Source: Schmidtea nova
Taxonomy: Eukaryota
Reading direction: 5' to 3'
Assembly: GCA_044892505.1 (NCBI GenBank)
Contig: CM097882.1
Location: 186,000,001-186,064,000 of the forward strand
DNA length: 64,000 nucleotides
The position numbers and the translations under genes are program-made. The notes below the pieces were generated by a model, which had not been told where the DNA came from, did no database searches, and saw nothing but the letters and a program-made list of their open reading frames with translations. Each line of letters begins with the position of its first letter. Positions within the stretch are counted from its first letter, which is position 1. Below, in pieces: positions 36,289-63,810 of the stretch.

Positions 36289-36289
36289 A

Positions 36290-37440: not shown

Positions 37441-37475
37441 TGGTGATACAATATTTCTTGTTTCATTTGAAAACG

Positions 37476-43381: not shown

Positions 43382-44583
43382 AAGAAATGGGTCGTCGCTT
43401 GATCTTTTAATGTCTAAATTTGAATCTGATGAGGAATATGTGATATATTTGTCATTGATATGTCACTGATTTTATTGGCTTTGACATCAGAATCTTTTTT
43501 TTCAGTTGAGAAGGCTTTACTGATTTAATTGTTTCTTCAGACTTAATAGGGCTGGTTTCTTTAATTACATTCGAAAAAGTTCCAAAAATTGTTTTTTTTT
43601 CATTGCATATTTTAAAAAATTATGAAATTGTCTTGTTTTGTCTTTGTATTTATAAGGTTAAAAATGTCGATGTAACCAATCAAGTACATGCATCTATACT
43701 GCATATTGGTGTGCATCATGATTCATTACCGACATTTAAGTGTATGCGGCAAATAACTTTTGTGACCTGTATCTGTGCATGCATGATTCAAATATGTATT
43801 TGTCATGCATTAGTATCGCATTTGTACAAATTAATTTCTTTAATAAAAACTGGTGACAAATAAAATTATTTATAATAAAAAATAGTTTAAACTATTTACT
43901 TTAATAATCACTCTTTTATAAACACACACACACAAAATTAAAAAAAAAAGATTTTCAATAATAAAAAACAAAGACAAATGCAAACTAAATATTTATTGCA
44001 TATCAACAATAGATGAATAATGGAATTTTTTCAATTCCTTTCTTAAAAGCCATGTATGATATTTCTTCACACGCTCGAAGCAATATTCGCATCGATTTAC
44101 ACAAATGCTGGCTTTATTAACAATTGGAAGATCCTCGTCTACCATTCTGAGATGATCGATCAATATAGTACGGAGATCGATACCAGATATTGCTCAGATC
44201 TTGAAAGGTAACATTTCCGGAGGGCAGTAAATGAGATCCGTTATCAATCTAGGGTACAACTTCCATCTTTCCGATGAGAATGGACATTAGTTTATCTAGA
44301 AACAAATAAAAAGTAAAAATAGAATATAAAATAGAATATAAACTATGTTTACCATTAATTGAAAACGAAGACATTTTTTGATGAATAACTGAAAAAACTG
44401 TTGGTATTTATACTAATTTATTTAAACACCTGCATACAAACAATCAACCAATCAGAATCGTACATTCGTATTGCGTATGCTATGCATTCATGGATAATAA
44501 AAAATCCAAAAATTCTTTATCTTCAATTATCGATTTTTTTCGCTAATAATTTGATTAACGCTATTTTGATAATCTATATTTTT

Positions 44584-44950
44584 TTACCCAAGTAAAATGA
44601 TTTTACCGCTAGCAAATATGTTGACGCACATGGGGTTATACTTAATAAATCTCAAAGTCGGAAATATTTCAGGTTTATAAACACATTCTATTATCTTTGA
44701 TAATTCATATAAATTGATATGAGTTCCGATATCTGCAGTGACTGTGATCGATTGAATTTGCAAATCATGTATCTTGAAATGTAAATCTTCTACTTTGATG
44801 GTTTTTTTACATGCCATAATTCGGCACTTACCGGTCTTGAAAAATATTATCGGATATATTCCGCTTCTATCAACAACTTGTTGATGCTTTCCTCATGGAA
44901 ATTGTAAATGAGATACTGAACATTTTTCTTTGTAATTTATGTTTCTTAAC
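44584..44950 (-). pseudogene. TBP-like pseudogene of the older Polinton
   Basis: IIFFKTGKCRIMACKK...YKPEIFPTLRFIKYNPMCVNIFASGKIILLG; orthologous to 50130-50600. Confidence 0.85.
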
Positions 44951-45048
44951 AATTATTTTAAAGAATAATTTTCAAATAATTTCTTAACTATGATAACAAT
45001 TGATTAAAACAAATATAAACAATAATACAATTTTAACAATTTTGAAAA

Positions 45049-45670
45049 ATGGAATTAAGAAATGATGCAGTTTATCAAATTGTTGGTCCTAGTGGTAGTG
45101 GGAAAACTTTATTTGTTTGTAAATTATTACAATCTAAAATGTTGAAGTCAAAATTCAACAAAATTTATTGGCATAGAGAAGCTGATGACGAACAATAAAT
45201 GATTTAAAATCAATTTTGTAAGATAAAAATGACGATAATAAAGGTTTTCGATAAAATCTGGTCATCTAGATTACGACAAGGTGATGTAATTATTATTGAT
45301 GATCTTTATTAGGAAGCAAATAAGGAAAAAACATTTATAATTTATTCACGAAAATAGCAAGACATAAAGGTGTCACAGTTATTTTTATAACTCAAAATCT
45401 GCTTCAGAAAGGTGGAGCTCATCGAACACGTAACCTAAATGTTCAATATTTAGTTTTTTTCAAAAATCCAAGAGATGCCACAGTTATTGATTTCCTTGCA
45501 AGACAAGCATACCCTAACAATCGTAACTTCTTAATCAATGCATTTCAAGATGCGACTCAAACCCCACATGGATATATTTTTCTTGATTTTACTCATCAAT
45601 TTCCAGTTGATTTAAGAGTAAGAACTGATATTTTCAATATCGAAGGTGCAATGGTTTATATACAAAGATA
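45049..45670 (+). pseudogene. Packaging ATPase pseudogene (older Polinton)
   Basis: MELRNDAVYQIVGPSGSGKT start identical to 50693; internal stops and frameshift. Confidence 0.9.
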
Positions 45671-46294
45671 ATATTATGTTTGTAATCAATCATGTTTCTT
45701 AAATCACGTGCCAAACAACCAAAGTCATCAAAACTTAGTAAGGTTTTTAAAAAGAATCGTGAAACAATAATTCCATCTAAAACTAGTTTCACACCTTCGA
45801 AAAAATTAATAACTGAAAATTTTCCATCAATGAATCTTATTTCAAGCAATTTAAAACCGACACCGAAGAAAGTTGGAAAAGTAATAAAATCTTCAAATCA
45901 TCGTAGCTTTCCATTTTTAACGCGTTGTTAAAAGCTCCAAGTGCAAAAAGAATGAATATTTTACAATCATTTCCCAATTATGTCATTGACGATTTACTAG
46001 ATGTTATACTTAAAGTAGACAAAGGTAAAATAAACATAAGTAAATCAAATAAAGTTATTTTAAACAAACACAAGAAACCACAGATTATCTCTAGTAAATA
46101 GTAAAAGTCGAAATCAAATGCATAAAATACTATGTAAACAACAAGGAGGGTTCAATGCCGCCCTTTTGCCATTAGCATTATCGTTATTGGGTGGAGTCAG
46201 TTTATTAAGAAAACCATCAACAACATAAACAATCTGACAAACCTCTTTAAGTCAATTATCTAATCTTACATTAAATTTTTAATCTTCTTGTTGT

Positions 46295-47300
46295 AATGGA
46301 GAAGAAATGGAAGAGCCCGAAAGACCCAGAAGGTTATGGTGGGGTCGAAAAGCTAAACAAAAACGTTCCAAACTCGAAAAAAGAGACACACAAGTGGTTA
46401 TCAGGTCAACTAGCATAAACCAATGTTGAAACGATTTCCAACAAGAGCATATAATACATATGGTATTAATGATTTGTGGCAAATGGATTTGATGGAAATG
46501 ATTCCATATTCAAAAATTAACAAGGGATATAAATATTTTTTGACATATATCAATTTCTTCAGTAGATTTGCACGTGCTGTTCCAATCAAAACAAAGTCAG
46601 CTAATAAAATTGCAATAGCAATTAAAACATTATTTGCTGATGGACATCCCAAGAATATACAAACTGATTTGGGTAACAATATAAAATATTATATACATTT
46701 TAATTATAAATTTAGGTAAAAAATTTACAATAGTAAAGTTAAAGAAATTTTCGCCGGGATTAATCATTACTCTGTATTCTTTCAATTCAAAACAGCTCAT
46801 GTTGAACGATTTAATCGAACATTATGAGATCGGCCCAAAAATTATTTTGTATACCAAGTAATAAGACATGGGTCAATGTATTGCCGAAAATAATTCATAG
46901 TTATAATCATTCTCCGCGTCTAGGTATAAATCGATTGAGACCTGTTGATGTTTCAGCAAAAAATACTGGAAAGATTTCTCGTCAAGTAAAAACATTAAAT
47001 AAACCGAAATATAAAATTAATGATCATGTTCGAATTAGCAAAATTAGTACTTCACCATTCATAAAGAATTTTGATAGTAATTGGAGTGATGAGGTATTTT
47101 AAATATCGAAAATATCCTGTCATGTATGTTATTTCTGACTCTGACAATAATGAAGTCAGTGGAAAATTCCACCACTAACTGTATTTAGAATTCAGAGAAT
47201 ATTGAAAACTAAAACGGTGGGTAAGGATAAACAATACTATGTAAAGTGGCATGGATATCAAAATCAATCATCGATATCAGCAAAAGATTTAGTAAAATGA
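46295..47300 (+). pseudogene. Integrase pseudogene (older Polinton), intron 46673-46715
   Basis: WQMDLMEM, QTDLG and HSYNHSP motifs in broken frames. Confidence 0.88.
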
Positions 47301-47582
47301 ATTTCTATACTATTTTACCTAGTAATAGTTGTCCATTTATCCATCCTGACAATCTAGCTAACAAGTTTATGGTCAATCTTCAAATTCCGAATTATTTACA
47401 TGGTGATTGGGAAATTGCATTGCAAGATTTCGTGTTTTTGTACAACACATTTCCATTTTATAGTCAATGTAAGATTGATTACAAAAAGATTGATTCAAAA
47501 ACATGTAGTGGTCTATTCATCATCAAAAATTTTGAAAGAAATTATACTATTCCTAACCAAAATTTGAATGCTTATTGTTGTA

Positions 47583-48636
47583 AGTAGGTAGATGTGTGGA
47601 GCCGGGAACAATTTGATTTCAAGCCATTTATCCCTAAACTGTATAATATTACGTAATAATTTATAAATTTACCCCCCCCCCTCCCCCCCGGGGGGTAGGG
47701 GGGGGGGTACTTTGTTACGTAATAATTTATTATTACGTAATAATTTATTATTACGTAATACTTTATATATTATGTAATTTTTAAAATTTTTAAATTATTA
47801 CATAAGACTATTTTTATTACGTAATTGATGACGTAATACTGAAATTTATTTATTTTTATTTATTTTTTCATAAAATATAAAATAAATTAATTTTTTCAAC
47901 ATTTTTTCCAAAATTTTCAAAAATGCTCAGATTTCAATAATTTTTATACCAATCTACTGAGAATTCAAAGGCGAACAAAAAAGGCACAAAAAAGGAAAAA
48001 CATAAAAAATTGGTATCATCCGACCAAATTTTACACGTAAAAAGGGTCAAGTCGGGGAAATTCCTTAAATTGATTAGAAATTAATAATTTTTATGCTAAT
48101 CTTCTTTCTATTGAAANNNNNNNNNNNNNNNNNNNNNNNNNNNNNNNNNNNNNNNNNNNNNNNNNNNNNNNNNNNNNNNNNNNNNNNNNNNNNNNNNNNN
48201 NNNNNNNNNNNNNNNNNNNNNNNNNNNNNNNNNNNNNNNNNNNNNNNNNNNNNNNNNNNNNNNNNNNNNNNNNNNNNNNNNNNNNNNNNNNNNNNNNNNN
48301 NNNNNNNNNNNNNNNNNNNNNNNNNNNNNNNNNNNNNNNNNNNNNNNNNNNNNNNNNNNNNNNNNNNNNNNNNNNNNNNNNNNNNNNNNNNNNNNNNNNN
48401 NNNNNNNNNNNNNNNNNNNNNNNNNNNNNNNNNNNNNNNNNNNNNNNNNNNNNNNNNNNNNNNNNNNNNNNNNNNNNNNNNNNNNNNNNNNNNNNNNNNN
48501 NNNNNNNNNNNNNNNNNNNNNNNNNNNNNNNNNNNNNNNNNNNNNNNNNNTGAAAAACAAATCATAACAACACACATAAAAATCAACAAAATTAAAAACT
48601 AATGTTTTTTGATAAAAATTTATTAAAATAACAAAG
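47583..48636 (+). repeat. Left terminal inverted repeat (spans a gap)
   Basis: Reverse complement of 62317-63160 on both sides of the N gaps. Confidence 0.93.
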
Positions 48637-48749
48637 TAAGGGGTTTTCAAAAAACATAAATTTTTAAAATACAACAAGTGAGAATTTATCAACATTTATT
48701 AATAAATACACATATATATACAACATCAATGTTATTTATTCGAATCCAT

Positions 48750-49193
48750 CTATGCAATTCTAGCGCTTTTTATTTTCCAAATTGGAGACATTGATTCTTT
48801 TGGATCGATTTTATATCCTTGGATGGATATATCAATAAACCAATTTTCATTATCTGTATATTCAACTGATTGAAATGCATCATGAAATTCGGTGTTCCTG
48901 TTGTTGATGAATATTGTTTCATTGCAAGATAATTTCTTGTTGATTTTCGTCAACACTTTATTGATTGCAACAACATCTTCTTTATAAATCTGACCAATCA
49001 AGTTGGAATATTGAGAAGTCGACAGCTTTACCGGATTTGGGACCTTGAAAAAAATTTCGTTTACCAAGAAAAACATTTGGTAATCGTGAAACATCTGAAC
49101 CGGTTGTAAATCAAATTTGTTTTGAATTGATTTGTTATCGTTCCTAACTGGTTTCATTTTAATTGGACTCGATTTGATGAAAATATTTTGCAT
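48750..49193 (-). CDS. Polinton accessory protein, 147 aa (possible OB-fold ssDNA-binding protein)
   Basis: Clean ATG ORF with TATAAATA ~36 nt upstream; beta-rich C-terminus IDISIQGYK...PIWKIKSARI. Function is inference. Confidence 0.65.
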   Translation of the reverse strand: MQNIFIKSSPIKMKPVRNDNKSIQNKFDLQPVQMFHDYQMFFLVNEIFFKVPNPVKLSTSQYSNLIGQIYKEDVVAINKVLTKINKKLSCNETIFINNRNTEFHDAFQSVEYTDNENWFIDISIQGYKIDPKESMSPIWKIKSARIA

Positions 49194-49668
49194 TTTATGA
49201 ACAAGACTATTTTTATTCTATTATTTATACTCGTCATTGTCTGTGTGCATCCAATAAAATTTTTGCACATGTCTTGCAAATCGATTACACATGTATGCAA
49301 GTTGACGATTATCTCTCTACCTCAATTTCTTTCTATTGTAATTTATTTACATATCTATNNNNNNNNNNNNNNNNNNNNNNNNNNNNNNNNNNNNNNNNNN
49401 NNNNNNNNNNNNNNNNNNNNNNNNNNNNNNNNNNNNNNNNNNNNNNNNNNNNNNNNNNNNNNNNNNNNNNNNNNNNNNNNNNNNNNNNNNNNNNNNNNNN
49501 NNNNNNNNNNNNNNNNNNNNNNNNNNNNNNNNNNNNNNNNNNNNNNNNNNNNNNNNNNNNNCATAACAACACATAAAAAAAAAATCAACAAAATTAAAAA
49601 CTAATGTTTTTTGATAAACTTAATATATAAACAATAAAACGATAAAAGAACATTTTTAAAATAAATAT

Positions 49669-50025
49669 TTATTTATTTACATCAAGCTTTCGTTCATAAC
49701 GATCCAGCTGATATAAGATTTCCTCGCGATCTTTTAAATATGTCCAATTGGGACAACATTTGCAATGAAAGCAGCAAATCGGTTCAATTTTCAACTGATT
49801 TTTCTTCCTATGCTCTCTAATGATATCCTTGATATCGATTCCAGTAAGCATAAATATCTTTACTGGGATCAATTCTGGAGCCCAGTACGTTAAATCCTTC
49901 AGTTGATAAGGATACAGTCTTTCAACCGTTTCGATCAATACTTGGGTAAGTTCTTCTAAATATAAAATTAATAAAAATTAATATATTATTTAAAGATATT
50001 TACCGTCTGTGGATTTATCTTGCAT
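49669..50025 (-). CDS. Two-exon Polinton protein (~102 aa, Cys cluster CCFHCKCC); exons 50025-50004 and 49955-49669
   Basis: ATG plus 22-nt exon, 48-bp GT-AG intron, in frame; the homologue in the older element has the same 22-nt first exon (44374-44353). Confidence 0.8.
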
Positions 50026-50129
50026 TTTGATAAAAATAATGAATAATTTACGTGTTTATATATGAAATATAGTAACACACAACAACCAATAAAAAACATA
50101 CACACTCATTACGTATACATTACAAATAC

Positions 50130-50600
50130 TTAGGTAATACTTAGTAAAAAGTTTAGGAATTCTTCCTCATCAATCATCGATTTTATTTCGTTAATAATTT
50201 GTTCAACCAAATCATGATAATCCAAAGTTTTAATACCAAGTATTACTATTTTGCCACTTGCAAAAACGTTTACACATAATGGATTAAATTTAGAATATCT
50301 CAAAGCTGGAAATATTTCTGGTTCATAAACACAATTAGATTTTTTCAATAATAAATATAAATTAACATGGGATCCTATATCTGCAGTCACTGTAATTGAT
50401 TGAATTTGAATATTTTCTATTGTATATTGTAAATCTTCATTTTTTAAAGGTTTTTTGCACCCCATAATTCGACATTTACCTGATTTGAAAAATATAATCG
50501 TATATTTTCCACTTCTATCGACAATTTGTTGAGGTTTCCCCATTGGAAATTTCATGTGCGAAACTGAGCATTTACCTTTATAATTTATGTTGGTCAACAT
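50130..50600 (-). CDS. TATA-binding protein (TBP)-like protein, 156 aa
   Basis: Two TBP repeats: TIIFFKSGKCRIMGCK and IQSITVTAD...YEPEIFPALRY...VNVFASGKIVILG (cf. TBP YEPELFPGLIY...LIFVSGKVVLTG). Confidence 0.88.
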   Translation of the reverse strand: MLTNINYKGKCSVSHMKFPMGKPQQIVDRSGKYTIIFFKSGKCRIMGCKKPLKNEDLQYTIENIQIQSITVTADIGSHVNLYLLLKKSNCVYEPEIFPALRYSKFNPLCVNVFASGKIVILGIKTLDYHDLVEQIINEIKSMIDEEEFLNFLLSIT

Positions 50601-50692
50601 TTATGATGTAATAAAAATTTAAATATTTTTTATTCGTGTAAAACAATTAATTAAAACAAATATAAACAATAACAATTTCTTTAATATTTTAA

Positions 50693-51316
50693 ATGGAATT
50701 GAGAAACGATGCAGTATATCAAATTGTCGGTCCAAGTGGAAGTGGAAAAACTTTATTTGTTTGTAAATTATTACAATCAAAATTATTCAAATCAAAATTT
50801 AATAAAATTTATTGGCATAGGGGAGCTGATGATGAACATGGAATGACTCAAGATCAATTCTGTAAAATTAAAATGACAATAATAAAGGGATTCGATAAAA
50901 ACTGGTCGTCTAGATTACGAAGTGGTGATGTAATTATTATTGATGATTTGTATCAAGAAGCAAATAAAGAGAAGGATTTCAATAATTTATTCACAAAAAT
51001 TGCTAGACATAAAGGAGTTACAGTAATTTTTATTACTCAGAATTTATTTCATCAGGGTGGTAGTCATCGAACTCGAAATTTGAATGTTCAATATCTAGTT
51101 ATTTTTAAAAATCCTAGAGATGCTACAGTTATTGATTTTCTTGCAAGACAGGCTTACCCTAATAATCGGAATTTCTTGATCAATGCATTTCAAGATGCAA
51201 CTAAAATCCCACATGGATATATTTTTCTCGATTTTACTCAACAATGTAGCGATGAATTACGTGTTAGAACTGATATTTTTAACAAAGAAGGAGCAATGGT
51301 TTATAAACAAAGTTAA
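50693..51316 (+). CDS. A32/FtsK-like DNA packaging ATPase
   Basis: Walker A GPSGSGKT, Walker B IIIDD, ARH, ITQN and FKNPRD, typical of Polinton ATPases. Confidence 0.95.
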   Translation: MELRNDAVYQIVGPSGSGKTLFVCKLLQSKLFKSKFNKIYWHRGADDEHGMTQDQFCKIKMTIIKGFDKNWSSRLRSGDVIIIDDLYQEANKEKDFNNLFTKIARHKGVTVIFITQNLFHQGGSHRTRNLNVQYLVIFKNPRDATVIDFLARQAYPNNRNFLINAFQDATKIPHGYIFLDFTQQCSDELRVRTDIFNKEGAMVYKQS

Positions 51317-51336
51317 ATTCGTGTTCGAAATTAATC

Positions 51337-51882
51337 ATGAGACTTAAAGCACGAGCTAAACATCCAAAGCTATCAAAACTAAGAAAAGTTATTAAAAAGA
51401 ATCGTGAAACATTAATTCCATCTAAAACGAGTTTCACACCTCCGAAAAAATTAATCACCGAAAATTTTCCCAAAATGAATCTAATTTCACACAATTCAAA
51501 ACCCGATAAACCAAAGATACCAAAGGCAACTGCAAGTAAAAATTCTAAAAATCATCGCAGTTTTCCATTTTTCAATGCCTTACTCAAGGCTCCAAGCATT
51601 AGAAGAATGAGTATTTTACAATCATTTCCCAATTATATTATTGATGATTTACTTGATGTTATAGTGAAAATTGTCAGAGGTAAAATTAATATCAGTAAAT
51701 CAAACAAAAATGTATTGAACAAACACAAGAAACCATTATTATCACTCGTAAATACTAAAAATCGAAAACAAATGCGTAAAATAATATATAAACAACATGG
51801 AGGGTTTATTGCTGCTCTATTACCATTAGCATTATCTTTATTGGGTGGAGCAGGATTACTGGGAAAACCTTCAACATCATAA
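51337..51882 (+). CDS. Basic core/DNA-condensing protein with adenovirus pX-like C-terminus
   Basis: Very Lys/Arg rich; ends QHGG|FIAALLPLALSLLGG, resembling the adenoviral pX GG|xLPxLIP tail. Confidence 0.7.
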   Translation: MRLKARAKHPKLSKLRKVIKKNRETLIPSKTSFTPPKKLITENFPKMNLISHNSKPDKPKIPKATASKNSKNHRSFPFFNALLKAPSIRRMSILQSFPNYIIDDLLDVIVKIVRGKINISKSNKNVLNKHKKPLLSLVNTKNRKQMRKIIYKQHGGFIAALLPLALSLLGGAGLLGKPSTS

Positions 51883-51885
51883 ACA

Positions 51886-52119
51886 ATGGGACAAACTCCT
51901 TTGAGTCATTTATCTAATCTTACATTAAATTTTAAATCTTCTTGTTGTAATGCAGAAGATATGGACAAATCCAAAAGACCCGGCAGGTTTCGGTGGAGTC
52001 GAAAAGCTAAAGAAAAAAGTCCCAAACTCGAAAAAAGAAACTCAAAAATGGTTATCGGGACAACTGGCATACAGTCTAAACAAACCGGCATTGAAACGAT
52101 TTCCAACAAGAGCATATAA
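51886..52119 (+). CDS. Small ORF overlapping the integrase 5' end in another frame (77 aa)
   Basis: ATG 3 nt after the previous stop; MGQ start, CC pair, basic tail; corresponding sequence retained in the older copy (~46231-46420). Confidence 0.5.
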   Translation: MGQTPLSHLSNLTLNFKSSCCNAEDMDKSKRPGRFRWSRKAKEKSPKLEKRNSKMVIGTTGIQSKQTGIETISNKSI

Positions 52120-53004
52120 AACATATGGCATTAATGACTTGTGGCAAATGGATTTGATGGAAATGATTCCCTATTCAAATATTAACAAGGGATATAAATA
52201 TATTTTAACATGTATCGATGTTTTCAATAGATTTGCTAGGGCTATTCCAACTAAAACAAAGTCTGCAAACGAAATGGCTGTTGCGATCAAAACAATGTTT
52301 GAATCTGATCGTCCAAAGAATTTACAAACTGATTTGGGTAAGAAGGTATACTAATTTTATCCATTTTTAATTATAATTTAGGTAAAGAATTTTACAATAG
52401 TAAAGTCAAAGAAGTTTTGGCCGGGATTAATCACTATTCGGTGTTCTCTCAATTCAAAGCAGCCCATGTTGAAAGATTTAATCGTACATTAAGAGATCGA
52501 CTAAAAAAATATTTTGTGCATCAAGGTAATAAAACATGGATTAATGTACTACCAAAAATAATACATAGTTATAATCATTCGCCACATAAAGGAATAAATG
52601 GATTGAGACCTGTTGATGTTTCAACGAAAAATACTGGATCTCGCAAATTAAAAACTAAAATAAAGAAACCGAAATATAAAATTGGTGATCATGTTCGAAT
52701 TAGTAAGATTAGCGCTTCGCCATTCATCAAAAATTTTGATAGTAATTGGAGTGATGAGGTATTTCACATCTCAAAAATTAATACTATCCAAGATCCTGTC
52801 ATGTATGTTATTTCTGACTCTGACAATAATGTCGTCAGTGGGAAATTTTATGAACAAGAATTACAAGTTATTCCTCCGCCAACTGTATTTAGAATTCAAA
52901 AAATATTAAAAACTAAAATTGTGGGTAATGATAAACAATACTACGTAAAGTGGCATGGATATCAAAACCCGTCATGGATATCATCAAAAGATCTAGTAAA
53001 ATGA
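51950..53004 (+). CDS. Retroviral-like integrase with C-terminal chromodomain; exons 51950-52337 and 52382-53004
   Basis: WQMDL (D), QTDLG|KEF (D), VERFNRTL (E); removing a 44-bp GT-AG intron restores QTDLGKEFYN; chromodomain YYVKWHGY..SWI. Confidence 0.95.
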
Positions 53005-53996
53005 ATTTTTATATGATTTTACCAAGTAATAGTTGCCCATTAATTCATCCAGATAATCAAGCTAGTAAATTCATGATCAATTTACAAAATCCAATTTATT
53101 TACGTGGTAATTGGGAAGTTGCATTGCAAGATTTCACATTTGTATATAACAAATTTCCTTATTACAGTCAATGCAAAATTTACTACACGATAGTTAGAAC
53201 TGAAACTGTAAATGAATACTTTCAAGTTCAAACTAATTATGAAGATACTCAATATTTGAATGATAAAGTTGAATTACATCTAGATAAAATATATTTACAT
53301 ATAAATTGTGATATAACACCATTTTATTTTAAGTTTGAAAATATAGAAGATGCGAATAAATTTGGGTTTAATGAATTAAAAATCATTAGCAACAATTCAA
53401 CTTATAAAATGCTTATTCCTTCTGAATATTCATCAGAGAAAATGCATATATCAATAAGTTATGATTTAGAAACAGATTTACTTTATGAATTCCAAGATGA
53501 AATATACATGACAAAAGTTGAAGATTTATATAATTATTTGTCAATTTTCTGTTCTCATATATTTCAAGGTGTTGAAATTATTGACAATGTATTCAAATTT
53601 AAACTGAAAGACGAAGTGAAAGAAGTTATATTTGATCAAAAACTGATCAATACACTTGGATTAAAATATGAAAAATATCAAGATAGAGAAGTTAAAGGAA
53701 TTCGCAAAGCCAAATTATTTAATCATCATCAACAAATGTTCATTTACAGTAACATTATTGAACCAATTATTGTCGGTGATTCTCTAGTTCCTTTACTGAA
53801 ATCAGTTTGGATTAATAAATATGAACAAGATGAAGTAGTACAAATTGTTGTTGATAATCCCATGTATTTATCGCTTTCAACTTCATGTATAAACAATATT
53901 GAGATTAATATTCGTGACGATAGTGGAAAGCTTATCAACTTTTCAAAAGATTCAAAAACACATTTGACATTACATTTTCGTAAATTAGATGATTAA
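53001..53996 (+). CDS. Minor capsid (penton-like) protein
   Basis: MNFYMILPSNS...N.ASKF...L.GNWEVAL and MFIYSNIIEP.IVGDS.VPLL...LHFR, typical of Polinton minor capsid; ATG at 53001 overlaps the integrase stop. Confidence 0.9.
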   Translation: MNFYMILPSNSCPLIHPDNQASKFMINLQNPIYLRGNWEVALQDFTFVYNKFPYYSQCKIYYTIVRTETVNEYFQVQTNYEDTQYLNDKVELHLDKIYLHINCDITPFYFKFENIEDANKFGFNELKIISNNSTYKMLIPSEYSSEKMHISISYDLETDLLYEFQDEIYMTKVEDLYNYLSIFCSHIFQGVEIIDNVFKFKLKDEVKEVIFDQKLINTLGLKYEKYQDREVKGIRKAKLFNHHQQMFIYSNIIEPIIVGDSLVPLLKSVWINKYEQDEVVQIVVDNPMYLSLSTSCINNIEINIRDDSGKLINFSKDSKTHLTLHFRKLDD

Positions 53997-54381
53997 TCCG
54001 GACATAATTTCACTGTATAGTAACGGACAAACTGGTGGGGAAATACCATATTTTGTTGGGAAACAGTATGGATCTGGTTGGTTAAGGACTATTGGGCGAT
54101 TTGCACTCCCAATTCTTAAGCGAATAGGTAGTTTTGGTTTGAAAACTGCCAAAGATGTGATCATGAATGATCAGAAAATATTACCATCATTGAAAACAAA
54201 TGCATTGTCTGCTATTGGCAAAGTACTGCCTACTGTGACTAGTATGATTCCTAGTGTAACAAATATGTTTAATAAAGATGAACCTGAACCGGAACCGGAA
54301 CAAGTGGGGCCTAGGCGTAAAAAACATCGAAGGTATATAAACAATAGAATGAAAGGACATGGAACTATATTTGCAAAATGA
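53989..54381 (+). CDS. Small virion protein with amphipathic helix (adenovirus pVI-like, putative membrane-active)
   Basis: QTGG and QYGSG|WLRTIGRFALPILKRIG amphipathic segment; basic C-terminus; lies between the capsid genes. Confidence 0.72.
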   Translation: MINPDIISLYSNGQTGGEIPYFVGKQYGSGWLRTIGRFALPILKRIGSFGLKTAKDVIMNDQKILPSLKTNALSAIGKVLPTVTSMIPSVTNMFNKDEPEPEPEQVGPRRKKHRRYINNRMKGHGTIFAK

Positions 54382-55598
54382 TTTGTGGTAAATCTGAATT
54401 ATGTCTTTTTGACCGACCATCTCCTCAAGCAGTCATTGAATATGGTGCATTTGAAGAAGTATTTCCCATGAATTCTATTACAGATGGTAGAAATGATGTG
54501 GAATTTTACATTAACGGATCTCAATCTGAATACTTAGATTTGAATGATACTTTACTAACAGTTCAAATAAAAGTTGTAAATGCCGATAAAAAAGATTTGT
54601 CTGCTACGGATGATGTTATACCAAACAATTTTATGTTTCATACTCTATTCAAGGACGCCATTCTTGGGTTTAATAATATAAAAATTGAAGGTGGAAACAA
54701 TACATATGCACACAAGGCAATAATCGAAACTATTTTAAATTATAATAGTGATACTAAAGAAACTTGTCTTACTCCAATGGGATATGGAGATTCTGATGAG
54801 AGAAAAGCATGGATCAAAGGCTCAAAATTGTTCACAATGTGTTCATCTCTACAACTGGATTTCATGGATCAACCGAAATATTTATTACCAGGTGTCAATG
54901 TTCACATCAGACTGAAGCGATCTGATTCTGCACTATCATTATATTCAAAAAATGGCGCACCAAAATGTCAATTAGTTGATGCAAAGTTAATGATTCGTCG
55001 CGTTCGAGTTGAACCATCTGTATTAGCTGGACATCAAGTTGGACTTAACTCAAAACACGCCATTTATCCAATAAAAACCAAAGAAATCGTACAATTTGCT
55101 ATTGGTAAAGGTGCATCATCTTTCTACAAAGAACAAATATTCGGAGATCGAAGGATGCCTAATTTTATTCTGGTCACATTTCAAAGTGAAACTCAATACA
55201 ATGGATCATATAATGCATCTAGTTCGAAATTCAAACATTTCAATGTAACTTCCCTATCTCTATCGAAAAACACTGATTATAGAGAAACATACACTCAAGA
55301 TTTCGAAAATGATAATTATTGTACTACATATATGCAGTCGATGGTCAGAAATATGGGATATTTAGATATGAATTTGAATTGTGGTATAACACTTGCCGAT
55401 TTTAAAAACAAATACCCTTTCTTTACATTTGTTTTGGCTCCGGATTTCGATTTAAATCAAAGTCAATTACCTCAAAATGGAAATTTGAGATTGGATATAA
55501 AGTTTTCTAAAGCTATTGAAGAACCAGTACATGTAATAATATATGGAGTATTTGAAAATGAAATTCAAATTTCTGCTAATCGAACAGTATTGGTTTGA
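54378..55598 (+). CDS. Major capsid protein (double jelly-roll)
   Basis: KSELCLF..P.PQ, EYLDLNDT, QPKYLLPGV...L.R, FKHFNV and GNLRLDIKF motifs typical of Polinton MCP. Confidence 0.92.
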   Translation: MICGKSELCLFDRPSPQAVIEYGAFEEVFPMNSITDGRNDVEFYINGSQSEYLDLNDTLLTVQIKVVNADKKDLSATDDVIPNNFMFHTLFKDAILGFNNIKIEGGNNTYAHKAIIETILNYNSDTKETCLTPMGYGDSDERKAWIKGSKLFTMCSSLQLDFMDQPKYLLPGVNVHIRLKRSDSALSLYSKNGAPKCQLVDAKLMIRRVRVEPSVLAGHQVGLNSKHAIYPIKTKEIVQFAIGKGASSFYKEQIFGDRRMPNFILVTFQSETQYNGSYNASSSKFKHFNVTSLSLSKNTDYRETYTQDFENDNYCTTYMQSMVRNMGYLDMNLNCGITLADFKNKYPFFTFVLAPDFDLNQSQLPQNGNLRLDIKFSKAIEEPVHVIIYGVFENEIQISANRTVLV

Positions 55599-55665
55599 GC
55601 AGAGCTCAGACATTACTGGTTTAAACTAACATTATAAATGTGCAATTCAAAGTTAACAATTTGTC

Positions 55666-56065
55666 ATGGAGTAAGTTTTTATTATTTATCAAATAAATCT
55701 ATTTAAATAGTTCTATTCAGATTAATCGAATTGGAAAACAATTATTGGGAAATGAATTTATTGGAGTATATCCACTAGACAAAATACCTTATTTAGATGA
55801 CAATCAAGCCATAGTCGTCAATACACAATCATCTACTCTAAGTGGCGAACATTGGATAGCTGTATATGTAAAGCCGATCAAGATATATGCATTCGATCCA
55901 TTCGGATGTTACTATCCAGGTTTATTAGTTAGTAAACTGCAAACATTAGGAAAACCTATTGAATATAATCGAATTCGATATCAAGATCCATTAACAATTA
56001 CTTGTGGTCAACATTGCCTTGCATGGCTTAATTCAATGTTAAAAAGTATAAACAATGTAGTTTAA
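55666..56065 (+). CDS. Adenain-like cysteine maturation protease; exons 55666-55670 and 55711-56065
   Basis: Catalytic GEHW, FDPFG and Q..TITCGQHC. No in-frame ATG without splicing; a 40-bp GTAAGT..TAG intron gives MDSIQINRIGKQLLGNEFIGVYP. Confidence 0.88.
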
Positions 56066-56068
56066 TAT

Positions 56069-56503
56069 ATGTTTTTAGAAAAAATGACTTGTTATTTTAT
56101 TGATATTTACGGCTATAATGATAATTGTGGTGGAAAAATTATTAAAGAATTATGTATTATGAATGTTAATAATATTTTTCGACCAAAATATTGGATATAT
56201 AATGATGTTCCTTTTTGGGCTGGAATTGGTGAACCTGATAGATTAGAATGGTATGAAGGTGAAGATCATTTTTGTCCAACTTGTATTTTGAAAGAAATTG
56301 AAGATGTTGGTGCGATTTTCTATGTTACTGATCAAGATAAACTTTCTGTTTTAAAAAGATATTTCCCCTCCCTAAGATTAATTAAGTATAATGTTAAGGA
56401 AGTTGAAACTTTTCCTGACAATATTTCATGTCCATATCGAGATCATACAAATTGTGCATATAAAGGGTGTTTGGTGGGGGTTTTAGATTATTTGAAAAAT
56501 TAA
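56069..56503 (+). CDS. DEDD-fold nuclease-like protein with putative E-C-H-C zinc site
   Basis: FIDIYGY...IIKEL N-terminus and CPYRDHTNCA C-terminus. Confidence 0.6.
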   Translation: MFLEKMTCYFIDIYGYNDNCGGKIIKELCIMNVNNIFRPKYWIYNDVPFWAGIGEPDRLEWYEGEDHFCPTCILKEIEDVGAIFYVTDQDKLSVLKRYFPSLRLIKYNVKEVETFPDNISCPYRDHTNCAYKGCLVGVLDYLKN

Positions 56504-56812
56504 TGATATGTTTAAATTAATTGCTTTGAAATACAAAATTAATTGATTTGCAATTGAAATGCATGACCTCTATGGTTATCGTGCATGAGTAATCGTGTGT
56601 GTGTATTAACGGAAATTATAATGACGTGTTTGATAATACAAACATCTGGTAATTTCATGTTGTTTGTGTGCGAGCATTTCTCTAACCTATATCGATTCTG
56701 ATTGGTTGGTTAATAAAATTTGAAATTTCATGCTTTATATACACTATACTTTTACTTTTTAGTCACTTTTAATCACAAACTTTAAACCGCATTAATACCA
56801 ATACTCTAAAAA

Positions 56813-57295
56813 ATGTTCAATTTTACTATTTCAAAGCAAAGACAACTCGCCGGAGGAATTAATGGTAAATTTCTGATTTTTATTTTTTATATTTCTTATA
56901 TTTATTTTATTAGAATTAAATATCGCGAATAATATCGCAAACACTCTAACAGCAACAACTAGCGGAAATGGAGCCGCATCATCAGTTGGAAAATCTAACA
57001 TAAATCGAAATAATGGTAAATTTTCTAAAATGATTATTATTATTTTTATTTATAATTTTTAGAAAATTTGCTAATTAATGTATCTAAATTCCATGAAGTA
57101 GATATTGATGGTGCTAATTATATGCCGAATTATGCCCCAAATTATATGCCGAATTATGCCCCAAATTATGCTCCGAATTATGCTCCGAATTATGCTCCTA
57201 ATTATGCGTCAAGTAATGCCCTAAATGACTGCAGTATTTCGGATGTCCTGAATTCTGGATCGAATTTCGTTGGAAAAGTATCGAAGAAATGTTAG
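56813..57295 (+). CDS. Three-exon Asn-rich protein with (NYAP/NYMP)n repeat; exons 56813-56864, 56914-57015, 57063-57295
   Basis: Two phase-1 GTAAAT..TTAG introns (49 and 47 bp) give one open frame of ~128 aa; missed by the ORF track except for the last exon. Confidence 0.75.
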
Positions 57296-58115
57296 TATTT
57301 ATTGTATTTTCGTTTAATTTCTGTTTTAAAGTTATTATTTGTTTTTTTATTTTAAAGTTATTATTATTTGTTTTTTATTTTAAATTAATATTTTATGATG
57401 AAGAATAAATTTACTATATCTTTAATGTAATATGTAATTGTTTGTTGAACCATTACGTATTAAGTTAAAGATAAATAGTTTATAAAATTAATTATATTTA
57501 TATTACGAAGAAAGAATTTTAGTTTTTTCTATAATAAAAATTATATAATGAACATATTTTAATGAAAATATATTATTTTATGACGAAGAAATCTATGTTC
57601 TAAATCTATGATAAATATTATGCTGATAACCTATTTCATTTTATGAGATTAAGTTTTAATGATATTTATTTTTAATAAATGTTTTATGATGAAATTAAGA
57701 ATAGATTGTGAGGGAAATTTTAGGAATATTTATAACAAATGATATTTATTTTCAATATTATAAAGTATTATTAAAAGTTATAATAAAAAATAATAATAAT
57801 AATAATACTAACTTAATGATAATATTAAAAACTAACATGTTTATCATATAACATACGGTAACATAATCGTTAAATTATCATATTTCGTTAATCGCACATC
57901 ATACAGTTACATAACCCTTTCAAACATAAACTTTATCTTTATTTTGACATTTGACTAACTTATTATGTAATAGTTTAAACTGATAAAATAGATTTAACTT
58001 TTTGGTAATAGGTTAAGCTTATGTTTATTTTTCAATTATTTTTTAATTATTTTATAATTATTTTTTAATTATTTTATAATTATTTTATCATTATTTTAAA
58101 GGTTCAGATTATCCA

Positions 58116-58553
58116 TTGTACTGTAATAGTACTTTACATAATGATTGCCATCACATTATGGAAAAATACTATTCCTACAAATATAATGGTGTCACCCACC
58201 TCCTCTGTCCTAAATGTAAAATTATAGAAACGATATCATATAGAGAATTCTTTAACAAACATAGGTCCCATCTTACTCAATATATGCCTTCAAAAAAATC
58301 ACTTTTTAAGAGTTTAAATCAAAACCAAATTAATTTCAATTATAATAATAATAACTTTAATCAAAATAATAATAACAATAATAATAATAAAAATGCCAAC
58401 ATTAACAACAACAATAATCTAAATAATAATAATAATTTACAAAATATCAATAAAAGAAAAAACACAACAAATATGGATTCAGTTCCTACAAAAATACAAA
58501 TAATCGACATCAGTGATGATGAAGATATTAATATTGATAATAATAATAATAAT

Positions 58554-58617
<64 letters not shown>

Positions 58618-61600
58618 GTAGTAATATTCATACTATAACCATCAGTGATGATGAAGATATTAATAATATTGATAATAATAGTAGTAGTAGTAATATTCAT
58701 ACTATAACCATCAATGATGATGATGAAGAAATAATCATCATCAGTGATGATGAAAATTCCCAATTAAATAATAATATAAATAATAATCAAATTGGATATG
58801 GGTTAGTCGAAGTCAATTCTGACTTGAACGACAATCATGTTATAATAAAACTAGATGTCACAAATTTAGAATTAAAAACGGTCTCAGTGCCTGACATTTT
58901 GTTAAATAAATTAAATTTCTATGTTAATAAATTAAAATCATGTAAAATTCAATTTTGCCTTAAGGTGGAATTTGAGAAAGATGATGAGTTACAATCTTTC
59001 GTCATCTCAAATTCTGCCAGAGTTTGGAGCGATACCTTCATTGACGAAGGTATTTCAAATTTAAATGAGAAAATAGTTCAAATAAATGAAAAAGGTAGTA
59101 ATTGGACTATCAATAAAATCGAGTACATAAGTTTTGTTCTCACTAAATTTTCAGAAATAAGTCGGTTAAGTGGCAATAGTTTTATTAAAACCCCTAAATC
59201 ATTAAAGAATTTAAGCTGTCTTATAAATGTAATTAATAATGACAATTTTTGTTTCTTGTATAGTTTCCTATCAATTATTAAATATGAAAATGTCAATAGA
59301 CAATATAGAAATCGTCCTACTTCCTACGATCTTTCACAAATTAAATTTGACCCTAATGATATGCCGATGAAACTGGCAAATATAAGTAAATTTGAAAATC
59401 AAAATCCCGGCTATAGTATTAATGTCCTTAGTTATGACGAAAAGGCCTTGATAGACATTTCTGATGAAGATGCAGTTTTGAAGCATCCTTTTATTGATAT
59501 AATTTATCGAAGTAAGGTAGTAGGAGGAATACCTATAAATTTATTATTAATTGAAAATAAAAATACTTATCATTATGTGGGAATCACAGATTTAAATAGA
59601 TTCCTTAATTGTAGGAATAGTTCAATCACTCCTGTTAGGATTTGTAGCCAGTGGTGTCCTAGGTGTTTAAACGGTTTTAGGAACAATGAGTCTTTTAATA
59701 GGCATAGGGGTCTTTGTGATAGAAATCAGCTGGGTACTACCTTGTACACATTACCCAAAAACAAATATCTTGAATTTACTGATTGGAAGAAAACTGTCAC
59801 TCCTCCCTTTGTTATTTACGCCGACTTTGAGGCTATCTTACCAAAAGATGTTAAATACTTTCAACGTCACTTGCCGATTTCTGCTGGCTTACTTCTAATT
59901 AATAATTTTACCGGTGTAAAAATTTATAAATCATTCGTCGGTTTAGATTGTGTCAATCAATTTCTTAATGAAATTGAGTTGATTAGTAAACATATAGTGA
60001 CGCCTTTCTTTTATAAAAATTATCAAAAGAAAATGATAATTACCGACGTTCAACAATTAGATTTCGAAAACAGCACATCTTGTTATTTGTGCAATAAACC
60101 TTTAGTTTGTCCAGTTAGGGACTATGACCATTTTACCGGTCTATTTCTTGGCGCAGCTTGCAAAGCTTGCAATGTTTCAAGGCAAATTAGACATACCCTT
60201 CCTGTCATCTTTCATAATTTAAAGGGTTATGATCTACATCACATCTTAAAATTTGGCCTTTCAAAATACCATTCATGGAATATTAGTTGTATTCCTTTGA
60301 CCAGCGAGAAATTTCTTAGTCTTTTTGCTAGGATTGACTCCTTAACCGTTAAGTTCATAGACTCTTATCAATTTGTCAGCGAGTCTTTAAATAATGCTGT
60401 CAAAACTTTATCTTCTTTACCCTTGACCGAATCTGAATTTCAGGGTACAATAATAACAGCAAAGGGAATTTTTCCGTATGACACGGCAACTTCTTTAGAA
60501 GTTTTACAAAACACTCATCAGTTACCTCCTATCTGGAAAGACGTGAAGCCAGATGAATATGAGACAGCTCAGAGAATTTGGCGTGAAACCTCATGTACAT
60601 CGCTTTATGATTACATGATGGTTTATTTGAAACTCGATGTTTTCCTTTTAGCTGATTATTTTCAGCAATTTAGAGCTAAGTCTATTGTACATAACCGACT
60701 AGAACCACTAAATTTCTTAGGAATTCCAGGTATGTCTTGGAATTCCGCCTTATTAACTTTAAAATCTCCAATTGAGCTCCTCACCGATATGGAGATGTAT
60801 AACTTTTTCGAGGGCGGTATCCGTGGCGGATTAACCTTTGTAAATAAACACTATGTAAAAACAGGCCCGGATACTGCATTGCTTTACATAGACATAAATA
60901 ATTTATATGGTTGGGCATTAAGTCAACCTTTGCCATGCAGTAACTTTGAATGAGTCACAGATGACCACTTATTAAATGATATAATTGTTGAGTGCACATC
61001 GGTAGATTTAGATGTACTTCATTATGGTTATACCATAGAAGTGGATTTAGAAATACCGGCGTCGATTCACGACAAACTGGATGATCTTCCAGTTGCCGCT
61101 GAAAAGATGTGTGCACCGGGTTCGAAAGTTGAGAAGCTGCTGCTTACGCACTATCCAAAGAGGAACTACGTTCTTCATTGGAGGCTTCTGCAACTGTTTA
61201 TTAAATTAGGTGTTAAAATATCAAAAACACATAGAGCAATAAAATTCACACAAGATAAAATTTTTCAAAATTATATAAATACAAATACGGCGTTACGAGC
61301 AACGTCGACAAATAAATTAGATAAAAATTTTTATAAATTACTAAACAACAGTCTTTACGGCAAGACTGTTGAAAATCTTAAAAAACGTATAAATTTGCGT
61401 TTATGCAATTCGTCACAGAAGTTAATGACTTACTGCTCCAAACCGACTTTCCGAAAATCCACTAAGATCGACGATGACTTGATTTCTGTTTTGTTACGGA
61501 AGGAATCAGTGTGTTTGGATAGACCTAGTTACATTGGTCAAACAGTACTAGATTTATCCAAACTTAGGATGTACCAGCTACAGTATGAAGAGTTGCAAAA

Positions 61601-62261
61601 ATATCGTGACGACTTCAACTGCGAAATCAATATCGTTGCTGGGGACACTGATTCCTTCTTTTTGGAAATTAAAAATATTTCGTTAGATATACTCTTACCG
61701 GCAATGATTAGGGACAATCTTCTTGACACTTCGAATTATGACCCAAATCATCCTTTATACAGTAGGAACCTTGATTCTGTCGTTGGAAAGTTCAAAGACG
61801 AGAATAAAGGGCTACTGTATGAAGAGTGGGTGTTCTTAAGACCTAAGTGTTATAGTTTAATGGGCGATGAGGCATGTATGAAAGCTAAGGGGATTTGCAT
61901 GAAAGATGCTGGACTAACACATCAGTCGTATCTAGATTGTTATTTAAATAACAAAATATACACAGTCCCCCAGTTTAGAATAACTAGTAAGAACCACCAG
62001 TTATTTAGTATAAAAAATAATAAGAGGGCCTTGACTTGTAAGGATGACAAGCGTAACTGGATTGATAAAAATAAAAGTTTGGCATATGGCCATTATAGAG
62101 GGGGTGACACCAATATATTTGTAGATGATCCTGATGAGTGGGCAAATACAGAATGGCTAGATGCCGAATGGCCTCATACAGAATGGCCCGATGCCGAAAA
62201 TCTTGAATGGGATAATGTCGATAACATAATGTTGCCGATAAATGAAGACACAATGTCGTAG
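58116..62261 (+). CDS. Protein-primed family B DNA polymerase polyprotein with one in-frame TGA at 60951-60953
   Basis: Exo YADFE, FHNLKGYD, KFIDS; pol YIDINNLYG, KLLNNSLYGKT, AGDTDS; KCY. The two ORFs are in the same frame, separated by a single TGA. N-terminal GSNW and NDNFCF..HY motifs; EndoVII-like CYLC..DH.TG..AC..CN insert. Confidence 0.93.
58335..58790 (+). repeat. Coding (AAT)n poly-Asn tracts interleaved with repeated I-x-I-S-D-D-E units
   Basis: Directly visible in DNA and translation. Confidence 0.9.
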
Positions 62262-62316
62262 ATAATTGTGGAAATGCCGAGGGACTTGCATGTCCAACCA
62301 GATAATATAGACGGCT

Positions 62317-63160
62317 CTTTGTTATTTTAATAAATTTTTTATCAAAAAACATTAGTTTTTAATTTTGTTGATTTTTTTATGTGTTGTTATGATTTGTTTT
62401 TCANNNNNNNNNNNNNNNNNNNNNNNNNNNNNNNNNNNNNNNNNNNNNNNNNNNNNNNNNNNNNNNNNNNNNNNNNNNNNNNNNNNNNNNNNNNNNNNNN
62501 NNNNNNNNNNNNNNNNNNNNNNNNNNNNNNNNNNNNNNNNNNNNNNNNNNNNNNNNNNNNNNNNNNNNNNNNNNNNNNNNNNNNNNNNNNNNNNNNNNNN
62601 NNNNNNNNNNNNNNNNNNNNNNNNNNNNNNNNNNNNNNNTTTCAATAGAAAGAAGATTAGCATAAAAATTATTAATTTCTAATCAATTTAAGGAATTTCC
62701 CCGACTTGACCCTTTTTACGTGTAAAATTTGGTCGGATGATACCAATTTTTTATGTTTTTCCTTTTTTGTTCGCCTTTGAATTCTCAGTAGATTGGTATA
62801 AAAATTATTGAAATCTGAGCATTTTTGAAAATTTTGGAAAAAATGTTGAAAAAATTAATTTATTTTATATTTTATGAAAAAATAAATAAAAATAAATAAA
62901 TTTCAGTATTACGTCATCAATTACGTAATAAAAATAGTCTTACGTAATAATTTAAAAATTTTAAAAATTACGTAATATATAAAGTATTACGTAATAATAA
63001 ATTATTACGTAATAATAAATTATTATGTAACAAAGTACCCCCCCCTCCCCCCGGGGGGGAGGGGGGGGGGGTAAATTTATAAATTATTACGTAATATCAT
63101 ACAGTTTAGGGATAAATGGCTTGAAATCAAATTGTTCCCGGCTCCACACATCTACCTACT
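62317..63160 (-). repeat. Right terminal inverted repeat (spans a gap)
   Basis: Reverse complement of the left TIR with a few substitutions and one ~11-bp indel. Confidence 0.93.
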
Positions 63161-63810
63161 GTTGTATGTATTTTAACAATGGTCAATCTTCAAATTCCGA
63201 TTTATTTACATGGTGATTGGGAAGTTGCATTGCAAGATTTCGTGTTTTTGTACAACACATTTCCATTTTATAGTCAATGTAAGATTGATTACAAAAAGAT
63301 TGATACAAAAACATGTAGTGGTCTATTCATCATCAACAATTTTGAAAGAAATTATACTATTCCTAACCAAAATTTGAATGCTTATTGTTGTATGTATTTT
63401 AAAAATGGTTGTTTAAATATTAATTGTGATTTTACTCCATATACAATTACATTTGAAAATATTGAAGAAGCAAAACTAATGGGAAGTCAACTTAAAATTG
63501 CAAGTACACTGAAAGAATATCAATTAAAGTTCGTGTTATTTAAACCGAATAGTTATTTGAAAGAAGATATTAAGATAACAATATCTTATGATGCATAAAT
63601 TGAAGAAACATTTACATTTCCGAATGATTTGTATATAGTGCAACTGGAAGATTTTTCTAACTAGTTATCATTCAATTGCTCCTATATCTTTAAAACTCTA
63701 GAGATTAATACATGGTTTCAATTCAGTCTCAATGATAATATTAGTGAAGTTACATTTGATAAAACTTGGTAAATACTTTAGTAATAAATAAACAAACATG
63801 TAGAGATCGA
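63161..63810 (+). pseudogene. Continuation of the older Polinton's minor-capsid gene (with a 226-bp duplication), truncated
   Basis: Resumes exactly after the TSD; HGDWEVALQDF...LNINCDFTP...VTFDKTLVNTL parallels 53001-53700. Confidence 0.88.

Follow-up and report, generated by a model that had tools for sequence, protein, structure and literature searches.

The 64,000-nucleotide (nt) stretch of Schmidtea nova DNA considered here, called the window throughout (NCBI GenBank assembly GCA_044892505.1, contig CM097882.1, positions 186,000,001 to 186,064,000 of the forward strand), carries a complete-looking Polinton/Maverick element at 47583-63160, and a nine-letter word, TATAAACAA, or a one-letter variant of it, stands upstream of 10 of the element's 13 genes. 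An earlier note on this DNA had proposed the word as a non-canonical TATA box; it is a real DNA-level signal, specific to one strand and tied to gene starts at a fixed short distance. It is probable that TATAAACAA(T) is a TATA-type core-promoter word, supplied once per gene and setting the start of transcription by RNA polymerase II (Pol II) about 26-31 nt downstream. The element itself encodes a short protein related to the TATA-binding protein (TBP), and the word may be read by this protein, a reading that is tentatively favoured over host TBP alone.

All of the motif coordinates listed in the earlier note were recovered, and its statement that the motif precedes most Polinton genes holds once one-letter variants are counted. 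The sites found by the motif scan are given below in window positions, with distances taken from the first base of the word to the ATG of the open reading frame (ORF) or gene; the orphan site at 49626 draws on the repeat analysis as well.

49221 to 49229, minus strand: variant TATAAATAA, 36 nt before the ORF-A ATG
49626 to 49634, plus strand: orphan exact motif with no downstream gene, adjoining a partial copy of the end of a terminal inverted repeat (TIR)
50052 to 50060, minus strand: variant TATAAACAC, 35 nt before the ORF-B ATG
50661 to 50669, plus strand: exact motif in the spacer from which the ATPase and TBP-like genes diverge, 32 nt ahead of the ATPase ATG; unchanged in the older copy
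51302 to 51310, plus strand: exact motif in the ATPase C-terminus (YKQ), 35 nt before the core-like ATG
51787 to 51795, plus strand: exact motif in the core-like ORF (YKQ), 99 nt before the MGQ ORF ATG
51878 to 51886, plus strand: variant CATAAACAA, overlapping the core-like stop codon and 72 nt ahead of the integrase ATG; unchanged in the older copy
52930 to 52938, plus strand: variant GATAAACAA in the chromodomain region of the integrase, 44 nt ahead of the penton-like ATG; unchanged in the older copy
53888 to 53896, plus strand: exact motif in the penton-like ORF (INN), 101 nt before the pVI-like ATG
54336 to 54344, plus strand: exact motif in the pVI-like tail (INN), 42 nt before the ATG of the major capsid protein (MCP)
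55633 to 55641, plus strand: variant TATAAATGT between the MCP and protease genes, 33 nt ahead of the protease ATG
56047 to 56055, plus strand: exact motif in the protease C-terminus (INN), 37 nt before ATG 56084 and 22 nt before the in-frame ATG 56069
45014 to 45022, plus strand: exact motif of the older copy, ahead of its ATPase remnant

The exact word thus occurs on the plus strand of the young element at 49626, 50661, 51302, 51787, 53888, 54336 and 56047, with a further copy at 45014 in an older, decayed copy of the element and an unrelated one at 2509. The site at 51878 is new relative to the earlier note, and its 3' end falls on the ATG of the MGQ ORF. For the penton-like gene the distance of 44 nt refers to the first in-frame ATG, at 52974; from the second ATG it would be 71 nt. 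The motif is present before the genes from ATPase to protease and before three small ORFs, and it is absent before the TBP-like gene, the gene for protein-primed PolB (pPolB) and a PNYA-repeat gene. That the TBP-like gene lacks the motif had been claimed previously, and this is true for its own strand only, because the 92-nt spacer from which it diverges does hold the motif of the ATPase gene. Column counts over 12 sites show a nine-letter informative core and a weaker T at the tenth position, with no extended flanks. The earlier note had described the C at position 7 as non-canonical for a TATA box, which has A or T there; with 10 C and 2 T this column carries the most information of all, and the first letter T is kept in 10 of the 12 sites. 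The TAAACA core is likewise exact in 10, carries T for C in one, and is broken in one.

The frequency of the word within the element is far above expectation. On the plus strand of 49562-56600 there are seven copies of TATAAACAA against 0.28 expected, and none of 2000 dinucleotide shuffles reached seven (the maximum was three), which bears out both the earlier estimate of less than one exact 9-mer by chance and the enrichment over a shuffled background. The shorter ATAAACAA occurs nine times in the same interval against 1.1 expected, a count again equalled in 0 of 2000 shuffles, and in 300 shuffles scored on both strands no 9-mer of at least three letters attained seven copies. A second 9-mer with seven copies, AAAATTAAT, was dismissed as an A/T-only sequence unrelated to gene starts. 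Over the whole window the excess is marginal (nine copies of TATAAACAA against 4.1 expected, with 5 of 100 shuffles reaching nine); outside the Polinton copies the only other exact match is the one at 2509, and there is no enrichment in the 50 kb of non-element sequence. All motif copies between 49.6 and 56.6 kb lie on the coding strand and none on the non-coding strand. The related string TAAACAA is skewed window-wide, with 36 occurrences on the plus strand and 9 on the minus strand, or 26 and 9 when 49.6-56.6 kb is set aside. Placement relative to genes is similarly constrained: of the eight ATAAACAA copies in the rightward gene block, seven are 20-110 nt before a start codon (P = 4e-6) and five are 30-46 nt before one (P = 5e-7).

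Several copies had been said to sit inside upstream coding sequence, and this is the case for five exact copies and one variant, which are translated as YKQ twice, INN three times and DKQ once, in two reading frames. The ORFs of the element contain 14 IN[NK] tripeptides, of which three are followed by the next gene at a distance of no more than 110 nt; all three are spelled T|ATA AAC AA, and none of the other 11 is, a contrast of 1 in 364 by exact test. Asn is encoded by AAC in only 17% of cases and Ile by ATA in 31%. Codon choice in the upstream genes therefore tracks the DNA word and not the peptide. Relatives of three of the proteins, studied as proteins alone and drawn from ENA, JGI and Logan assemblies (those listed are 39-89% identical), number 139 for the MCP, 486 for the ATPase and 96 for the pVI-like protein. 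YKQ lies within the last 20 amino acids (aa) of 111 of the 120 listed ATPase relatives, where 0.012 is expected per tail; its flanks on both sides, including the rest of the tail, are variable, and the nine exceptions are mostly one letter away from the word at the codon level. Among the pVI-like relatives, 68 of 96 have IN[NK] within the last 30 aa, mostly 12-15 aa from the end, a position that would place the word about 39-45 nt from the stop codon, as it is in the window, where the MCP start overlaps the pVI-like stop. Directly ahead of IN[NK] the residues K, E, Q, M and W, whose codons cannot end in T, never occur, although they make up 28% of these tails. This conservation of YKQ and IN[NK] fits what a conserved DNA word would be predicted to give. 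The conserved pVI-like tail as a whole consists of IN[NK], basic residues and then a G-T-I-F-type end.

The older copy provides a further comparison.

44152 to 47582, plus strand: older decayed copy with ORF-B, TBP-like, ATPase, core-like and integrase genes and the start of the penton-like gene, about 80-83% identical (alignment to the young copy)

The young element is inserted in the penton-like gene of this copy. At the five sites that can be aligned, 43 of 45 motif positions are identical between the two copies, compared with 82.7% overall (P = 0.01). The motif before the ATPase gene had been described as conserved in the older copy in spite of a diverged spacer; the motif and the 20 nt before it are identical, and the spacer after it contains insertions and deletions. 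Two older-copy variants point in opposite directions, TGTAAACAA keeping TAAACA with a weakened TATA and TATATACAA doing the reverse. Every gene of the older copy is decayed, with one stop in ORF-B, two in the TBP-like gene, three together with a frame change in the ATPase gene, seven in the core-like gene, and six along with frame changes in the integrase gene; the penton-like gene is cut by the insertion. In the divergent spacer at 50601-50692 the part that precedes the ATPase motif matches the older copy unusually well, and the TBP-like strand of the spacer carries a different A/T-rich box, some 30-40 nt upstream of the ATG.

The distribution of ATG triplets between word and gene bears on where transcription might begin. 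Across 11 motif-gene pairs there are eight ATGs in the first 26 nt (286 nt in all) and none in the 280 nt that run from motif +26 to the start codon, where 6.6 would be expected by local frequency and about 4.4 once the in-frame constraint is taken into account (P ~0.001-0.01). For this count the last ORF was taken to start at ATG 56084 and not at 56069, a choice that affects only one short segment. Freedom from ATG beginning at +26 fits a transcription start about 26-31 nt after the first T, as is typical of a TATA element, and it argues against the word itself as the start site and against a single long polycistronic RNA.

The preferred reading of these observations is the following. A copy of the word before each packaging, capsid, protease and integrase gene, and before two small leftward genes, would be bent by a protein of the TBP fold, and each copy would direct Pol II to a start of its own some 26-31 nt further on, so that leaders would be very short; the start sites are predicted from the sequence. 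The protein tentatively favoured for this role is the element's own, whose second repeat keeps the stirrup residues by which cellular TBPs engage TFIIB, while conserved positions on its sheet are unlike those of the cellular and archaeal TBPs aligned with it. Ordinary host promoters would serve the TBP-like gene, pPolB and the PNYA-repeat gene, and the outcome may be a two-tier programme, early and then structural, with the timing suggested by this arrangement.

The TBP-like protein matches the Pfam TBP family (PF00352) with 64 bits over residues 63-139 and matches TBPs in the PDB, including archaeal, microsporidian and other examples; such sequence profiles cover the second TBP repeat only. 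A structural model built from the family alignment (pLDDT 95) has four strands without helices in the first half and a complete repeat in the second, and its Foldseek alignments with cellular TBPs run through both halves (about 170 columns), with TM-scores on the query of 0.66-0.75. According to this model the element encodes a TBP-fold protein with a putative saddle formed by both halves. Among viral proteins, those closest in structure are the TBPs of phycodnaviruses and the mimivirus group, and proteins of the BcRF1/UL87 type match weakly (ranks 28 and 48). An exhaustive search returned 1353 matches, about 100 of them short proteins (~140-180 aa) aligned end to end, which indicates a distinct family and not a one-off capture, and all 44 aligned family members match Pfam TBP; the presence of the gene in the older copy also shows that it belongs to the element. 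Among the 44 relatives F97, N111, F113 and M46 are invariant and E93, E95 and R44 nearly so; R44 and M46 belong to the first half. F97, F113, E93, P94 and E95 align with identical residues of PDB TBPs; we take the two phenylalanines to be those that kink DNA, and E93/P94/E95 to be the TFIIB-binding stirrup. Where these aligned TBPs have Asn, Leu and Thr, the family has the conserved S68, N111 and L121. This pattern fits a protein that may still dock to the Pol II machinery with a changed DNA face.

Several observations weigh against the promoter reading. The exact word at 49626 has no gene downstream, as had already been remarked. The predicted leaders of about 1-15 nt would be unusually short for an animal host, and two sites lie about 100 nt from their ATG (99 nt for the MGQ ORF, 101 nt for the pVI-like gene). 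The variants CATAAACAA and GATAAACAA, together with TGTAAACAA of the older copy, weaken the TATA portion and keep the TAAACA core. Among the protein relatives the YKQ/INK frame never switches, so this proxy cannot separate DNA constraint from protein constraint, and the conserved pattern of the pVI-like tail resembles what we take to be an adenain cleavage site, possibly one that releases a C-terminal peptide as in adenovirus pVI.

The alternative that survives best accepts the word as a slightly unusual TATA box and has it read by host TBP only, with the TBP-like protein otherwise employed, for instance in titrating host factors or in serving another polymerase. The first six letters are indeed a perfect TATA core, the placement and ATG-free leaders suit any TBP, and the sole link between the TBP-like protein and the motif is their presence in one element. 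What host TBP alone would not lead one to expect is that the three to four letters following the TATA core are equally invariant, with the C most informative of all. The lack of enrichment in non-element sequence and the strong constraint on the sheet residues of the TBP-like family also tell against it, and this alternative is judged rather unlikely.

A host forkhead-type factor, for which TAAACA is a core site, could instead activate the element in particular cells without positioning transcription starts. The core is found in all copies except that at 55633, once with T for C, and the three variants with a weakened TATA retain it, whereas TATAAATGT (55633) and TATATACAA of the older copy break the core and keep TATA; as a set, the motif variants are equivocal between the TATA and forkhead readings. 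The first T, which lies outside the core, is nevertheless preserved as described above. Single orientation and fixed, narrow spacing from the gene starts are not expected of forkhead sites; together with the abrupt onset of ATG depletion at +26, they point to a positioning element. The exact 9-mer does appear in papers on FoxF targets (PMC10943081, PMC1891290). The forkhead explanation is a serious rival but, as a whole, improbable.

Use of the word as a 3'-end (polyadenylation-type) signal of the upstream gene is highly improbable: an A-rich hexamer is part of the word, and copies occur at or close to the ends of the ATPase, core-like (51878), MCP (55633) and protease genes, but the 50661 copy has no upstream gene on its strand, and the copies at 51787, 52930, 53888 and 54336 stand 45-108 nt before the stop codon of the gene that contains them, where their use would truncate the protein. 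Least probable, and excluded for practical purposes, is that a recurrent peptide, or chance in AT-rich DNA, produced the repeats, since the marginal window-wide excess and the conservation of YKQ and INK peptides among relatives are outweighed by the use of two reading frames as well as non-coding copies, by rare codons at gene-proximal sites only, by a count that 0 of 2000 shuffles and no other 9-mer of at least three letters reach, and by a placement P of about 1e-6.

The genes to which the TATA-type word is attached, and those without it, are listed here with the evidence for each.

48750 to 49193, minus strand: ORF-A, 147 aa, no family match (ORF and Pfam)
49669 to 50025, minus strand: ORF-B, two putative exons with a short GT..AG intron, no assigned family (read from the sequence; weak remnant in the older copy)
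50130 to 50600, minus strand: TBP-like gene, 156 aa, no motif on its own strand (Pfam PF00352 at 64 bits, PDB TBPs, model, Foldseek)
50693 to 51316, plus strand: A32/FtsK-type packaging ATPase (Pfam Pox_A32; 486 relatives)
51337 to 51882, plus strand: basic putative core-like protein, a label taken from the earlier note, with no family match (Pfam scan)
51950 to 53004, plus strand: rve integrase with chromodomain and a putative short GT..AG intron (Pfam rve, Chromo)
52974 to 53996, plus strand: putative penton-like protein, likewise the earlier note's label (ORF)
53989 to 54381, plus strand: pVI-like small protein with a conserved tail (96 relatives)
54378 to 55598, plus strand: double jelly-roll MCP (139 relatives; model with pLDDT 89.5; Foldseek)
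55666 to 56065, plus strand: adenain-like cysteine protease with a putative short intron after the first two codons (Pfam Peptidase_C5)
56069 to 56503, plus strand: 144-aa ORF (139 aa from ATG 56084), no family match (ORF and Pfam)
56813 to 57295, plus strand: PNYA-repeat gene with two putative short introns and no motif upstream (read from the sequence)
58116 to 62261, plus strand: pPolB (Pfam DNA_pol_B_2, PF03175)

The integrase match to PF00665 (34 bits) is above its cut-off, and the rve_3 and Chromo matches are below their curated cut-offs. At the place in the older copy that matches the putative integrase intron there is a gap of similar length (~62-66 nt). Splicing of the MGQ ORF to the integrase was considered and dropped, as the reading frame is not kept. 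The MCP model matches iridovirus and PBCV-1 MCPs in Foldseek with E = 1e-16, and mavirus and Sputnik MCPs are also among its matches; an exact look-up of the MCP sequence gave no hit. The PNYA-repeat gene, which lies between the capsid block and pPolB, contains tandem repeats and has no family match, and the 300 nt upstream of it resemble a host-type promoter. The N-terminal third of pPolB contains many poly-Asn runs. One in-frame stop interrupts the pPolB reading frame of the young copy, so that this otherwise intact-looking element may not be autonomous. The putative introns are of the GT..AG kind and 40-50 nt long, and the G+C content of the DNA is 25-30%.

The boundaries of the young element were established from its inverted repeats, termini and flanks.

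47583 to 63160, no strand assigned: young Polinton/Maverick, TIR to TIR, 15.6 kb (inverted repeats, termini and flanks, gene content)
47583 to 48636, plus strand: left TIR, interior masked as N (inverted-repeat pairs)
62317 to 63160, minus strand: right TIR, interior masked as N (inverted-repeat pairs)
47577 to 47582, no strand assigned: left copy of the 6-bp direct repeat GTTGTA, a target-site duplication (flank sequence)
63161 to 63166, no strand assigned: right copy of the 6-bp direct repeat GTTGTA (flank sequence)

With TIRs of about 0.85-1.05 kb and GTTGTA duplicated on each flank, the termini are those of a Polinton/Maverick, and the gene content includes the hallmark pPolB, rve integrase, double jelly-roll MCP, A32/FtsK-type ATPase and adenain-like protease. 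ORF-A, ORF-B and the TBP-like gene point leftward; the rightward order is A32-type ATPase, core-like, integrase, penton-like, pVI-like, MCP, protease, 144-aa ORF, PNYA-repeat gene and pPolB. Poly-C/poly-G palindromic tracts are found in both TIRs (47644-47735 and 63038-63077), about 80-120 nt from the element ends. A partial copy of the TIR inner end, 79-88% identical, is present internally at 49563-49638, between ORF-A and ORF-B and following a stretch masked as N; it contains the orphan motif at 49626, and the genuine TIR inner ends carry a degenerate form of the word. About 208 bp of the older copy's penton-like gene flank the young element on both sides (47375-47582 and 63179-63390) with approximately 97% identity. 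The right-hand copy starts 18 nt past the element end, and the duplication, which far exceeds 6 bp, may reflect rearrangement, a second event or the way the assembly was made.

The remainder of the window is rich in transposons. A BEL/Pao-like retroelement region at 30362-38781 has a long ORF with aspartyl protease and the DUF1759 gag that is typical of BEL/Pao, in which captured ubiquitin and Hsp90 fragments precede the gag, and a DUF7041 ORF with an integrase remnant follows this long ORF. BEL/Pao elements are not known outside animals; this region is the main indication, joined by the short introns and the low G+C content, that the host is probably an animal. A mariner-like ORF was recognized by eye and has no Pfam match, and the remaining ORFs of the window gave only weak Pfam matches to hAT, below the cut-off, and EEP. 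Rfam and tRNA scans of the 64-kb window returned no match. Masked N runs outside the element are at 1307-1538, 13695-13871, 14754-15157 and 22703-22839.

A word shared before each gene and a self-encoded TBP-like protein together make a concrete hypothesis for Polinton/Maverick transcription. The literature searched, which covers part of the journals, contained no promoter word shared across Polinton/Maverick genes and no pairing of one with a TBP-like gene. The motif could serve as a simple aid to annotating gene starts in the Polinton family, and the short TBP-like family, which forms about 100 clusters at 50% identity, offers a natural series of minimal TBPs that is as yet unexplored.

Among known systems, adenovirus has a comparable capsid module (double jelly-roll MCP, penton, pVI and adenain protease) and a TATA element ahead of its structural genes. 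Adenovirus late genes depend on one major late promoter with splicing to a common leader, whereas in the Polinton the word is repeated gene by gene, and separate starts are favoured by the ATG pattern. Virophages and polinton-like viruses resemble the Polinton in having one short word directly upstream of most genes, and their promoter motifs match the late promoters of their giant viruses (PMC8547959, 10.1101/2022.07.28.501842). Those words are read by the cytoplasmic machinery of the giant virus, and no giant virus is implied for the Polinton, for which spliceosomal-type introns and a TATA-like word suggest nuclear Pol II. A virus-encoded TBP fold is shared with phycodnaviruses, mimiviruses, marseilleviruses and asfarviruses, although the TBPs of these large viruses are longer (~190-500 aa) than those of the Polinton family (~140-180 aa), in which the first repeat is helix-less in the model. 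A gene labelled 'TBP' has already been drawn for some midsize linear double-stranded DNA viruses, according to the Figure 5 legend of PMC8502044; for these viruses no pairing of motif and TBP was found in the papers searched.

By analogy, the closest known system is the late-gene machinery of herpesviruses. Late genes of beta- and gamma-herpesviruses use a viral TBP-like protein of the BcRF1/UL87/ORF24 family together with a non-canonical TATA variant (PMC7498053, PMC4893493, PMC4922670). Common to both systems are a virus-encoded protein of the TBP fold and a TATA variant ahead of structural genes, about 30 nt before the start in herpesviruses. The herpesvirus protein is large, acts with five partner proteins and contacts Pol II directly, whereas that of the Polinton has 156 aa, no evident partner genes and a much closer relationship to cellular and archaeal TBP; the words also differ, and binding is only predicted here. 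In its fullest form the comparison would describe a Polinton/Maverick family, in this case probably of an animal genome, in which a minimal TBP of about 150 aa, with a helix-less first repeat and a re-tuned DNA face, redirects host Pol II to a TATA box with C at position 7 before every structural gene, a proposal that is speculative and should be regarded as doubtful. Were it true, a 15-kb nuclear virus-like element would run its own early-to-structural switch, as a miniature counterpart of herpesvirus late-gene control, and the arrangement of a private TATA with a viral TBP, suspected earlier in giant viruses and known from the large herpesviruses, would extend to small elements that are often placed near the root of the virus realm.

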